NCBI GenBank assembly: GCA_965240325.2 | Contig: OZ251225.1 | Span: 2,418,001 to 2,482,000, forward strand | Source: Rebecca billardiae RCC1528 | Lineage: Eukaryota; Protista; Haptophyta | Direction of reading: 5' to 3' | Length of the DNA stretch: 64,000 nucleotides | Shown here: positions 11,526 to 16,046 of the stretch, in pieces | How positions within the stretch are numbered: the first letter of the stretch is position 1 | Layout of the letters: the number at the start of each line of letters is the position of its first letter | Translations under genes and position numbers: made by a program | The notes under the pieces: model-generated | What the model was told of the DNA's origin: nothing | Databases searched by the model: none | Seen by the model: the letters and a program-made list of their open reading frames with translations, nothing else

Positions 11526-12150
11526 TATTGACGTTGCAAGAAAACCTAGAGCCCCGGCCCAGCGCGGGAAGCGGCGACACCGCCCTGCGGCGTGGTTCGC
11601 CCCGCGCTTGTGGGGGCTAGCGGCTTGCGCATCGCCATCGGAGGAAGTTCTTGGCGCCTGTGGGATGCTCGTGAAGTGCGTTTGCCCGCGCGAGCACGCG
11701 AGGGGTGCATTCCTCTCGCTAGCCTCGCGCCGGCGCGCGTGCGTGCGCTCGTTCGGAACAGCATGTTGAACCCCGCGATCACGACCGCGTGAAGCCCGCG
11801 CACGTGACATTGTGCCGGATGACAGGGCGCCTGGGGCCGGGCAAGTATACTACGGATGCATACGTCGGGATGACATCGTATGCCACCCTCGCTAGTGCAC
11901 CGAATGCCCCTGATGTGCTGTCCCGCGTGCATCACGACCAGTCCGCCGTGCCGTCGTCGAGAGTGACCCACCCAACTTCAGACTGCAATATTAGGTCCCA
12001 GGGTGATGCTCAGGTCCCTGGAGGTGTTGGGCCTGTATCATGGTGTCAGGGAGACCCAGAATGACTTATTCGCCGGATGCCCATCATGCCGCTGAGACCT
12101 AATATACCCGTGTAACGGTCGGGGCTCTAGGTTTTCTTGCACCATCAATA
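11526..12150. mobile_element. MITE-like non-autonomous DNA transposon with ~31 bp terminal inverted repeats, TA-bounded
   Basis: Left TATTGACGTTGCAAGAAAACCTAGAGCCCCG (11526-11556). Right CGGGGCTCTAGGTTTTCTTGCACCATCAATA (12120-12150) is its reverse complement with 2 mismatches. Confidence 0.75.
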
Positions 12151-12459
12151 GTGAGTTTGAGGACTGGTGATGAATATGAAATAGCTAGATAAGTGTGGCG
12201 ATATTACTATACAATGCGGATACACATCATTTTTCAATCGTGAATTTGGGTTCGTGAAAGTGAATTTTCACGAACCGATGAAATTTGTATGACGGCCAAT
12301 CTCGATCTGTCGAGATGTTCGGGACAGTTCGTTACAATTGACGAAACGTCATTGAGAAGGCATGATGATTATAGTCCTTCTTTCTCTACATACTCACAAT
12401 ACCAATAGTCAATGAACAAGCGCTGCGACAGCCGCGCGGGCGAGTGAGTGGACCGCGTC

Positions 12460-15400
12460 ATGCGTGCCTCCCCGGTCGCCCTCGTCCTGCTTCTCGCGGC
12501 GCTGACCGCTCGCGCGCAGCTCGTCATCACCAGCGGGCCGTCGCGGCTTGTCGGGCGTGAGTTTATCGCGCCGCCATTCCGCTTCTCCCCGCACCCCTTC
12601 GACGTGGAGGCCGCGCCGGTGATCCTGACCGAGGGCGCGGAGTGGTCGTACGCGGCGTGTCCGCCCGCGTACGTCGGGCCGCACGTGCTGCGCGGCGCCA
12701 TCGTCATTCATGCGCAGCCAAATTTTGTGCTGTGCTCACTCGAAGAGCACGCGCGGGGCGCGCGCGCGCTGAGCCGCGTCGCCGCGTGGGCGTTGTGGGT
12801 CGATGCAGCGGTGGTGTTTGAGACGGAAGTCGGGTCTTTCAAGAACGTCTGGCTGCTGGGCGACGTGGGCGCGATCGCCTCTCCACCGGCGGTGGACCTG
12901 GGCGGCTGGCAGACTGCCCCACTCATCAAGGTCCTGCGCGAGGGCTCCGTCGTGAGCGCGAGCCTCAGCCCCTCCGTGTCGGAGTGGGATCGCATGCGTG
13001 CGTCGGGATGGCTCTTCCTCTTCCAGATCAGCTTCGGGCTGCTCGCGCTGGGGCACGCCGAGTACGCGCTGGCGCGTCTCGCCGCCTTCGTGGGTGCGGA
13101 CGGCGGTCCACGTCCGAGCATCGCACAGGTCATGCTCCTGCTCGAGGTGCTCGCCAACGCGATGCGAGCGGTGCAATCCGCCGACCCAAACTTTTCTCAC
13201 GGCCTTTTCCCGATGCACGTCGTCCTCAGCTTCTTCTGGCTGCCCGTGGTGCTGGCGACGATCACGACGGCGCTGTTCCTCGTGCACTTTGCGCAGGCAG
13301 CAGCGCGCGGCATCGCCTCATTCCGGCTGACCGTGCCCGCGCTCCGCGTCGGGCTGTACGTCCTCTGCCTCACGATGGCGACCGTCTACCTCTGGTTTGA
13401 GATCAACCTGAGGCAGCCGTCGAGCATGAGCTTCTTCATCTTCGTCGCGAGCTCGCAGGGGTTCTACATCGGCTTCCCCGCGCTGCTCGTGGTCCTCAGC
13501 CTCGCGACGGACGCGCTGGTCCGGCGCCGGCTGCGAGACCTCCCGCTGCCCATGCTGCGCTCCCTCTCGGCGCGCGTGCGGCTCTCCGCGCTGCTCTCGG
13601 CCGCGCTTGTGGTGCTGGGGCCGTTCATGTACTGGAGCAAGAACGCGCCGTGGCGCATGCTCGGGATGGGCACGGCGTTCAACCTGCTGAGCCTCGCCGT
13701 CTCCAACGCGCAGATCGGCGCATTCGCCCCCGCCGGCGTGCGCGTGCGCTACGGGCCGCTGTGCGCGCTCATCCTGCCGGCGTACAGCGCGCTCGAGACG
13801 AGGGCGCCCTCGCCGCGCGCGCAGGTGCGCTCCGCGGCGCGCTCCTTCCTCAAGCCGTCGGCCGTGACGCCAGCTGAGGAGCTGTCGAGCCCCGGCCGGG
13901 AGGCGGGCGCGGAGGCTCCGACAGTGGACGACGCGGTGCACCAGCACACGCACGCGAGCGAGGACGTGGACGACGAGCGGATGTTCCTCGGCGTCTCGCT
14001 CCCGTACCTGCACGAGCTGGCGGAGGCGGAGGCGCTCACGGCCGAGCACTCCACCGCGCACGTCAGCGCGATCGTCCGCGAGCGCACGAGGGAGAGCGGC
14101 GCGTCGCTCGCGGAGCTCGAGTCCGCAGCAGATACGCAAGCGGCGGGCAGGCCTGCGGTGGCGCGGGCCACCCTGTTCGTCTCCCACGCGCAGAGCTGCT
14201 CCTTCCTCAAGCTCGTCGACGCGGTGCACGTCCACTGCCGCATGCACGGCGTGGACATCCACACGGTGCACGTGTGGATCGACATCTTCTCGTGCGCGCG
14301 CGCGCGCACGCGCCGCGCACGCCGGCCGACGCGCGCACGCTCAGTCGCGCTGCCAGCCCGCGCCTTACGCGCGAGCCGCCCCGCGCCCCTCCCCTGCCCT
14401 CGCCTGCCCGCCACCCTCCCTCCGCGCCTGTGCCGCGCCGCGCAGCATCCGGCAGCACCACATCTCGACTGAGGTGAAGCGCATCGCCGCCATCGAGCGC
14501 GCGATCGGCCGCGTGGTCGTCGTCCTCGACCCGTGGCACGACCCCGTCTGCCTGAAGCGGTGCTGGTGGTGCGCGCCCGCCTCTCGCGTCGCCGTGCGCC
14601 ATCCGGCGCGGCACCGTCAACTTGCGGGCCACGGCTCACGCGCTTCTGCCGCGCGCGCTGTGCCGCCGCGAACTCGCGCGCGCCGCGCGCCGGGGCCACA
14701 GCCTCTTCGAGATCGCGCAGTGCTTCTTCGCCACGGAGGGCGCCGACCACTCGCAGAAGACGGTGAAAGTGTCGCTCACGATGGCGGAGGAGGAGCGCGT
14801 CTCGCTCGTGCGAAGCCTCGAGCAGAACACGGGCACTCTCGAGCTCGCGCTCAAGCGCTTCGACGTGCGCACCGCCCAGGCGTCTGTCGAGAACGACCGG
14901 ATCAGCATCCTGCAGCACATCCAGACGCGCGGCTGGCCACGCGTCGAGCGGCAGCCGTCGTCGTCCATGCCCGCCCGCGCCTCTCCCCAGCTCGCGCCGC
15001 GCCCGCGCGCCGAGCCCCCCCTCGATCTCATGACCACCCCGGAGCGCGACGACCCGCCGCCGGACTTCGAGACGATGGGTGCGGACACCGCGATCGACGT
15101 GGGCGGCGTCGCGGCGGCTGTGTCAAGCAGGGACCCGTCGCCCACCATGGATCACCACCTCCAGCTGCTGCCCGGCGACGAGAGCTTCAACCGCTTCAAC
15201 GAGGTCGTGCGCGAGGAGCTCGCCAGGGCGGTGGCGGTCATGAGCTGGCAGCTGAGCCGGCCCACCCGCCATTTGCCCTCCGATGCGCGATCGCGCAAGA
15301 AGAAGCACCAGTCCGACGGCGCCGTCCCGCTGTCCCGCGGCTCCTCGGGCACCTCGAGCCAGCCGTCGACGCCCGTGCGCACGGCGCGCAGCAGGCCCTC

Positions 15401-15746
15401 GAGTCACACGTCGACGCCTGTGCTTCAGGCGCGGTCGCGGAGCCGACCCCCCAGCCTCTCGACGACACCGGTGGTCAGGGCGCGCAGCAGGTCTGCTACG
15501 TTGAGGACCCTCGAGCTGGAGGAGGCCGCCACCGCCAACGCGAATGCGCAGCCTGGCGCACGTCTCGCCCACGGCACGTCCCCCCTTGTGCCGGCGCGAA
15601 GCAGCAGCAGAGCCGGTGCAAGCAGATCTAATTCTGAGGCACGGCTGCTGCCAGGCCCGGTGGCGGCTCCGACCGCGGCAGGCGACGACGCCGAGGTCCC
15701 AGTGATGCCCGCAGAAGCGGCGGGTGCTGATGATGGCCACGCATGA
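12460..15746 (+). CDS. 7TM receptor-like protein: signal peptide, ~160 aa ectodomain, seven TM helices, cytoplasmic TIR/HET-like domain, S/R-rich tail; exons 12460-14291, 14446-14568, 14702-15746
   Basis: Hydrophobic N-terminus and seven hydrophobic segments. Two GT-AG introns (14292-14445, 14569-14701) join LFVSHAQ...VWIDIFS-IRQH...VVVVLDPWHDPVCLKRCWC-LFEI...AQASVENDRISIL. Confidence 0.75.
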
Positions 15747-16046
15747 GTCATCGCAGTTCGCACTGTCAAGTGACCGCGTTACCAATACCACTTACCAGAC
15801 GAATCAGACGACGATTATTAATCGCGGTGACTACGTGACAATATATATATATATATATTATAATAATAATATATTCATCTAGTTACACCGCCGCCCGTAT
15901 TATACTTATATATTTAACGACGTGGCAGCATCGGACAAGCGTCAGGCTCAAGAGTGCAACAGACACATAGAATGCGTCCGCGCCTTCCGACCAGGTCAGA
16001 CAGTGCGCCACCCGCAGCCCTGCCCCCCTACGGGAGCGGGGCCGGG

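Follow-up and report, generated by a model that had tools for sequence, protein, structure and literature searches.

The window analyzed here is a 64,000-nucleotide stretch of contig OZ251225.1 (GenBank assembly GCA_965240325.2, positions 2,418,001 to 2,482,000 of the forward strand) from the haptophyte alga Rebecca billardiae RCC1528. Its positions 12460-15746 on the plus strand are confirmed, as far as prediction from DNA goes, as a three-exon gene for one membrane protein of 999 residues, in which a PA-like ectodomain and a seven-transmembrane (7TM) bundle with the G protein-coupled receptor (GPCR) fold are joined to a cytoplasmic domain that very probably belongs to the TIR/HET superfamily (Table 1). 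The function that we favor is that of a receptor whose TIR/HET-like tail would act most likely as a TIR-type N-glycosidase through the glutamate of its WxxxE motif, a proposal built on sequence motifs and structural models to which we give about an even chance.

Gene model and the homolog in Diacronema lutheri

The fusion of receptor-like and cytoplasmic parts is visible in the unspliced DNA. The open reading frame (ORF) list of the window contains an ORF at 12448..14472 that includes the ATG at 12460, and a single uninterrupted frame runs from this start codon through the signal peptide, the ectodomain, the seven helices, an acidic linker, and on into the cytoplasmic domain, of which it covers 105 residues ending with VWIDIFS. 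Because the membrane part and the cytoplasmic domain share this ORF, their fusion is independent of any splice. Excision of 14292-14445 and 14569-14701, both of which begin with GTGCGC and finish with CAG, results in a coding sequence of 3000 nucleotides that ends with a TGA stop codon at 15744-15746 and in a protein that reads VWIDIFS/IRQH and KRCW/CLFEI across the two junctions. An earlier note on this DNA had proposed these two introns (junctions 14291/14446 and 14568/14702) and had pointed out that the cytoplasmic domain is spread over three reading frames in the ORF list; the spliced reading was reproduced and the split into three frames is just as described.

A search with exon 1 retrieved a homolog (P0001) at an E value of 1e-130 whose cluster includes the 1115-residue protein KAG8458467.1 of Diacronema lutheri (P0151). 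The spliced window protein aligns with the latter along its whole length, signal peptide and tail included; identity is 46% across 949 columns, and no gap falls at either junction. Intron positions differ between the two genes because intron 1 is found only in the window, with WIDVFAIRQH being contiguous in the genomic DNA of D. lutheri, and because intron 2 is shifted by 3 nucleotides: its D. lutheri counterpart (GTGAGC..CAG) lies 3 nucleotides downstream of the second junction of the window gene. The site of this second intron falls within a Cys codon in the window (14569-14701) and within the Leu codon of WCL in D. lutheri (L001, 4367-4471). The splice junctions are assigned here by homology and splice-site consensus rather than by transcripts.

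Conservation differs between the modules of the protein. The TIR-like core is the best conserved, with 63% identity to the D. lutheri protein and 50% to another relative (P0007), followed by the PA-like domain (52% and 39%, respectively) and then the 7TM part (45% and 26%). We note that a second D. lutheri protein of 317 residues (KAG8458474.1, P0152), encoded on the same 260-kb contig and seven locus tags off, is near-identical to the C-terminal third of KAG8458467.1 and represents an incomplete second copy of that gene's tail end. The GC content is about 68% in the window and 73% in D. lutheri, as suits two related GC-rich haptophytes, and the GC-rich gene studied here is bracketed by short AT-rich spacers (window 12100-12420 and 15780-15960), of which the 3' one contains (TA)n and (TAA)n microsatellite repeats near 15840-15875.

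The PA-like ectodomain and the seven-helix membrane part

An AlphaFold2 model with the window sequence as target and an alignment of 22 homologs over the first 447 residues of the protein as input (pLDDT 91.7, pTM 0.87) comprises an alpha/beta ectodomain that is followed by helices at residues 183-213, 221-241, 252-283, 293-317, 325-357, 363-393, and 397-421 as well as a short helix at 433-446. The seven helices thus span residues 183-421 or about positions 13006-13722, which agrees closely with the earlier note that had placed them at 13008-13730 behind a signal peptide and an ectodomain of ~160 residues. Across the 22 homologs, conservation is seen in a cysteine pair (C67/C92), in a GDSR-type motif, and in cytosolic loops (RADGG past TM1, AF.P.G and GPL past TM7). 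A Foldseek search with this model returned GPCRs of several classes, and when GPCRs of classes A, C, and T as well as designed proteins with a GPCR-like fold were re-aligned to it with VIA, the Z scores were 16-18.4 (root-mean-square deviation 3.1-4.5 Å over 210-255 residues), values that exceed the caution level of Z 13 that VIA sets for helical bundles. Sequence identity to the solved GPCRs is 5-14%, and no Pfam 7TM family matched any of 23 family members at E values up to 1.

The ectodomain had been described in the earlier note as reminiscent of PA domains, and several comparisons point the same way. Foldseek matched it to the PA-bearing aminopeptidase 2ek8 (162 columns, E value of 2.7e-3) and to vacuolar sorting receptor 1 in its lumenal domain (8r4y, E value of 1e-2), and rows of the ESM Atlas with a PA match were found at a TM score of 0.4, which reflects a partial alignment of the model only. 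The Pfam PA family (PF02225, gathering threshold 23.9 bits) did not match the window protein itself and matched three of the 23 members weakly (E < 1); P0018 reached 20.3 bits at an E value of 6e-4. We conclude that the N-terminal module is, as modeled, GPCR-like in its fold and PA-like in its ectodomain; membership in a named family is not established.

The combination of PA-like domain and 7TM bundle is also found in unnamed ESM Atlas clusters of 461-607 residues from Endomyxa and Zoopagomycota, which resemble the N-terminal 447 residues of the window protein in shape (TM score of 0.68 over 400 residues) and in language-model features (0.95-0.96). These uncharacterized proteins are unable to hold a domain of ~230 residues in addition because they are only 461-607 residues long, and they constitute a separate receptor-like family that lacks annotation.

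The cytoplasmic domain and its family

An exhaustive HMMER search at E values up to 1e-3 with a contiguous homologous stretch (P0001:600-754) as query matched 1472 proteins, which form a large protist family without Pfam annotation. In an alignment of 39 full-length domains of about 220 residues (A1), the Gly of LGVS, the His of FVSHA, the W and D of WxDxF..Q, and the W and E of RxWCLxE are invariant. Among 92 family domains, W651 is conserved in all and E655 in 90, and H576, W606, D608, P640, W641, and R649 are each found in at least 86. The HET consensus consists of a strand-A motif of SYxWG type followed by WIDxxCIxQ and then RxWxxQE, and motif blocks of this type appear in the window protein in the same order (FVSHAQ, VWIDIFSIRQH, and KRCWCLFE). 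Within the whole 64-kb window, positions 1-300 included, tblastn with the domain detected no paralog.

The structure of the domain was predicted for the relative P0007 (residues 534-752; pLDDT 95.3, pTM 0.91), where a 65-residue N-terminal subdomain precedes a core of alternating strands and helices (69-218 in the model) and the C-terminal helices. The invariant W and E of the family lie on the helix after the third core strand of this model. The earlier note had pointed to an intact glutamate of catalytic type, given for TIR domains as WCxxE at helix C, and this Glu is near-invariant in the family and belongs to a WxxxE motif on the predicted helix C. A Foldseek search of the PDB with the P0007 model returned almost exclusively TIR domains at E values of 0.03-1, and the TIR domains of MyD88, TRR-2, SpbK, SARM1, IL-1RAcPb, ThsB, MAL, and RPP1 came out on top of a VIA scan across 48,161 chains with Z scores of 5.4-6.1. 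Re-alignment of the Foldseek list gave Z 6.4 for AbTir-3AD and Z 6.3 for SARM1, and TIR domains prevail in both lists, among them those of the NADases AbTir, SARM1, RUN1, RPP1, ThsB, and SPARTA. The model of P0007 thus has a flavodoxin-like alpha/beta core of TIR type at the level of the fold (Z 5-6.4). The earlier note had expected a Foldseek search to recover a TIR/HET fold, and this held insofar as TIR domains dominate the results, with E values and Z scores that stay modest (0.03-1 and no higher than 6.4).

Sequence comparisons point in the same direction. Identity to the structures of TIR NADases is 9-17%, and a profile of the 39 aligned domains matched a single PDB chain, the Paracoccus TIR protein PdTIR (3h16), at an E value of 0.28 with FVSHAW...WlDvFs aligned to FISHAW...WYDDFS. 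A trimmed profile of 100 family cores likewise found only PdTIR in the PDB (E value of 0.8), and phmmer searches of the PDB with pieces of the domain gave nothing beyond noise. When these 100 cores were compared to Pfam one by one, 16 matched HET (best E value of 4e-5), eight TIR_2 (best E value of 5e-4), and one SEFIR, with every other family reaching three at most; the members of the 39-domain alignment produced the same pattern. The HET matches in relatives cover profile positions 35-75, which is consistent with the HET motif blocks. The score of P0001 against HET (PF06985) is 12 bits (E value of 0.26) at a gathering threshold of 22.5 bits and P0151 does not match this family, and neither the window exons nor P0151 match the Pfam families TIR and TIR_2. 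Among the PADLOC models, only two families matched, both weakly, and one of them, the TIR-bearing SAVED_TIR, was matched by a single member. We do not file the window domain under PF06985 or PF13676 because no Pfam family cut-off is reached. The TIR/HET-like domain of the earlier note therefore stands on its TIR-dominated structure lists and conserved motifs as a remote relationship, with Pfam scores below cut-off and Z scores of 6.4 or less.

According to the literature, TIR domains need the Glu within the WxxxE of their helix C to act as NADases, and HET has been described as a TIR-like domain with a conserved Glu whose biochemical activity is listed as not determined. Dyrka et al. reported PdTIR and TcpB as the best HHpred matches of HET as well as HET homologs in haptophytes and stramenopiles, and overexpression of fungal HET domains induces cell death (review).

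The domain is followed by a Ser/Arg/Pro-rich tail (residues 839-999) that is not conserved, with 27% identity to P0151 and no counterpart in P0007, and that could be a phosphorylation-rich receptor tail. It contains STPV..ARSR units at residues 874-883 and 889-898 and a third variant near 905.

Table 1. Features of the gene at window positions 12460-15746
Feature	Position	Strand	Extent and characteristics
Exon 1	12460..14291	+	Residues 1-610 and two bases of codon 611; ORF, translation, homolog at E 1e-130
Intron 1	14292..14445	+	154 nt, GTGCGC...CAG; frame stops at 14472 if retained
Exon 2	14446..14568	+	Residues 611-652, codons split at both ends; encodes IRQH...IGRVVVVLDPWHDPVCLKRCW
Intron 2	14569..14701	+	133 nt, GTGCGC...CAG; interrupts the Cys codon of the WCLFE motif
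Exon 3	14702..15746	+	Residues 652-999 and TGA; remainder of the domain, insert, conserved last helix, Ser/Arg/Pro-rich tail
Signal peptide	12460..12519	+	Residues 1-20; hydrophobic 3-20, N-termini of 23 homologs align, low pLDDT followed by folded domain
PA-like ectodomain	12520..12999	+	Residues 21-180; conserved Cys pair C67, C92; model pLDDT 95-98
Seven transmembrane helices and helix 8	13000..13797	+	Residues 181-446; GPCR fold
Acidic linker	13798..13974	+	Residues 447-505; poorly conserved, 34% identity to closest homolog, length varies in family
N-terminal subdomain	13975..14163	+	Residues 506-568; LGVS..FL and TT.eV motifs; strand and three helices, pLDDT >95 in homolog model
TIR-like core	14164..14741	+	Residues 569-665, both introns inside; FVSH576, W606-I-D608, P640-W641, R649-x-W651-C652-L-F-E655
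WxxxE motif	14564..14711	+	W651 at 14564-14566; C652 split by intron 2; E655 at 14709-14711
C-terminal part	14742..15260	+	Helical 666-727, lineage-specific insert 728-808, conserved last helix 809-838 (FNRFNEVVREEL..MSWQLSRP)
Low-complexity Ser/Arg/Pro-rich tail	15261..15743	+	Residues 839-999; STPV..ARSR repeats

The window gene belongs to a multigene family. The PA-7TM module lies upstream of the domain in at least 46 of the 157 relatives that were fetched, several D. lutheri paralogs among them, and both modules are present together in MMETSP transcripts of the relatives P0021 and P0159. Relatives without the 7TM part mostly join the domain to TPR_12/TPR_10 repeats (37 of the 51 scanned), and oomycetes, haptophytes, chlorophytes, and ciliates are all represented among the domain-TPR proteins of the ESM Atlas. 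These non-7TM relatives matched 49 Pfam families, the 25 most frequent of which include no NTPase domain, and they follow an effector-plus-repeat design without the NOD of NLRs. Two or three copies of the domain in tandem are present in the soluble relatives P0025, P0035, P0048, P0051, P0062, P0080, P0098, P0102, and P0111.

In a quick maximum-likelihood tree, the window domain pairs with that of P0151 (SH-aLRT 98), and 18 of 19 7TM-linked domains fall into one clade of 35 rows, apart from a group of 49 rows that has no 7TM-linked members. The unlabeled rows of the 35-row clade are mostly short and could be fragments. This topology may reflect a single origin of the fusion between 7TM part and domain. 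NCBI names the homologs "hypothetical protein". Two UniRef names on D. lutheri paralogs of the same architecture, "Heterokaryon incompatibility domain-containing" for P0018/P0158 (KAG8471001.1/KAG8471002.1) and "RGS domain-containing" for P0033 (D. lutheri KAG8460825.1), were not reproduced by Pfam or PDB searches, and we have set them aside; the 250-residue linker of P0033 looks low-complexity.

Proposed mechanism and known systems

A mechanism for the candidate receptor N-glycosidase can be sketched from the observations, which comprise the gene model, a conserved architecture, the folds, and near-invariant residues at H576, W606, D608, W651, and E655. Its signal peptide would direct the PA-like domain to the exterior of the cell or to a lumen, the seven GPCR-fold helices and helix 8 would cross the membrane, and the TIR/HET-superfamily domain of ~230 residues would follow in the cytosol after a linker of variable length. 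A ligand at the PA/7TM part might then alter the conformation or clustering of the receptor and in this way bring the cytosolic domains together. TIR domains must come together to form an active site or a signaling assembly. Once assembled, the domain would cleave NAD+ or a related nucleotide through E655, and the output could be a second messenger, a loss of NAD+ with cell death, or death triggered in the manner of fungal HET domains. On this reading, the protein is a "GPCR-bigram" with an output module of immune or cell-death type. A more tentative extension, which we hold to be possible though hardly the likely outcome, sees in it a ligand-gated 7TM-TIR enzyme that bypasses G proteins and serves haptophyte algae as a surface receptor in immunity or self/non-self recognition, for example toward viruses or in cell fusion, with the soluble domain-TPR proteins acting downstream or in parallel.

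Several points weigh against a receptor with an enzymatic TIR/HET-like tail. At the level of the domain, its structure was predicted for P0007, which is 43% identical, and not for the intron-split domain of the window itself; its structural Z scores do not exceed 6.4, a range for which VIA warns that it may mean a shared arrangement only, and nucleoside deoxyribosyltransferases score almost as high as TIR domains in the same scan. None of the three exons taken singly, nor P0001 or the full D. lutheri protein, gives a Pfam match above cut-off. The role of E655 as catalytic Glu is suggested by its motif and its place on the helix rather than by superposition of individual residues, and WxxxE is also reported to be conserved in the TIR domains of Toll-like receptors (TLRs), which act as scaffolds. 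This Glu is therefore no proof of catalysis, and the motif is unable to separate an enzyme from a scaffold. At the level of the receptor, we found no GPCR family signature or link to G proteins and did not see DRY or NPxxY in the sequence of the window protein, and PA domains are found in endomembrane sorting receptors, with the ectodomain matching vacuolar sorting receptor 1 (lumenal domain) as well as the PA domains of peptidases.

The alternative that survives best, which we regard as rather unlikely, takes the domain as a non-enzymatic adaptor, such that activation of the receptor would nucleate homotypic assemblies with soluble domain-TPR proteins just as the TIR domains of TLRs recruit MyD88 and MAL. 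The conserved WxxxE of TLR TIR domains fits this idea, plausible partners exist in the domain-TPR relatives (37 of 51) and in those with tandem copies, and the TIR domains of MyD88, MAL, TRIF, and TRAM rank with the top structural matches; Dyrka et al. have also proposed that HET works as an adaptor. However, a polar set of H576, D608, and E655 together with W606 and W651 that is near-invariant in ~90 divergent domains resembles an active site more than it does an interface, and the closest links in sequence lead to bacterial domains of TIR_2/PdTIR type. A second alternative, an improbable one in our estimation, is an endomembrane receptor of cargo or sorting type whose PA domain would be lumenal, like that of vacuolar sorting receptors and of PA-TM-RING proteins, and whose cytosolic domain would regulate trafficking or turnover. 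The PA-like ectodomain and the lack of a GPCR sequence signature in Pfam would suit such a protein, but the known PA sorting receptors are single-pass proteins without the GPCR-fold bundle and helix 8 seen here, and the attached domain is of a type known from immunity and cell death.

Still less credible is a generic Rossmann-like domain that processes nucleosides or nucleotides (similar to deoxyribosyltransferases, SLOG, or DprA) and that is not specifically TIR/HET. Nucleoside 2'-deoxyribosyltransferases, DprA, and ShosA do align with the P0007 model at Z 4.2-5.5, near the scores of TIR domains, but the top structural rows are TIR, the FxSHAW, WxD, and WxxxE motifs are of TIR type, and the only recurrent sequence matches are HET, TIR_2, ThsB_TIR, SEFIR, and PdTIR. 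That the gene model is an artefact of two separate genes or of a pseudogene, as the split of the domain over three frames might suggest, is close to refuted by the single ORF that holds 7TM part, linker, and first 105 domain residues, by the gap-free homology that splicing restores, by the occurrence of the same architecture in 46 relatives including transcripts, and by the intact state of all key residues.

Bacteria, plants, and animals all share TIR domains as elements of immunity and of regulated cell death, and fungal HET is their poorly understood cousin; here, a domain of this kind is wired to a GPCR-fold receptor with its own ectodomain, and this in a conserved family. If the enzymatic receptor that we favor proves true, a TIR-type module would be controlled here in a new way, the GPCR-bigrams would gain a class of output, and haptophytes, which are ecologically important algae, would offer a tractable entry to the study of their innate immunity or programmed cell death. 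The analysis also flags a large protist domain family, with its 1472 matches, that Pfam does not model yet.

We searched the literature for 7TM and TIR, TIR and haptophytes, and HET together with oomycetes or TPR and found no description of a 7TM-TIR/HET fusion, in line with the earlier note, which had not recognized this architecture as a described one. The closest known designs are the TLR and IL-1 receptors, the fungal HET proteins, and the GPCR-bigrams of oomycetes. Fungal HET domains (PF06985) share with the window domain a length of about 220-240 residues and the motif order xSHxW/SYxWG, W-I-D-x-x-x-I-x-Q, and R-x-W-x-x-x-E, and like the window family they have PdTIR as best match among solved structures; HET is also the most frequent Pfam match of the family (16 of 100 cores). 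Fungal NLRs use NACHT or NB-ARC with WD40 or TPR repeats, whereas the window family combines its domain with a PA-7TM receptor or TPR and has no visible NTPase. With the TIR NADases (SARM1, plant TNL and TIR-only proteins, AbTir, ThsB, and the TIR-APAZ of SPARTA), the window domain shares the alpha/beta core, which matches them best, and the WxxxE of helix C, and the bacterial-type FxSHAW of strand A and W-x-D of strand B are likewise common to its family and TIR; unlike these enzymes, it has an extra N-terminal subdomain of 65 residues and a helical C-terminal extension.

TLR and IL-1 receptors follow the same logic of a binding domain outside, a link across the membrane, and a cytosolic TIR-type domain that is brought together to signal. 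They are single-pass proteins with LRR or Ig ectodomains, though, whereas the window protein has a PA-like domain and a seven-helix core of GPCR fold. GPCR-bigrams of oomycetes and other protists combine an N-terminal GPCR-like 7TM part and a C-terminal putative catalytic domain in one chain and form multigene families. The window protein fits their definition of a 7TM part and a catalytic-type C-terminal domain in one polypeptide, with a tail that is putatively catalytic, but its 7TM part falls into none of the GPCR families of Pfam and has a PA-like ectodomain attached. For GPCR-bigrams, the output domains published so far are PIPK, INPP, AC, PDE, and TKL, with no TIR/HET type among them. 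Receptors with TIR domains and GPCR-bigrams are thus known kinds of proteins, of which the PA-7TM receptor with a TIR/HET-type tail appears as a variant that the searched literature does not describe.

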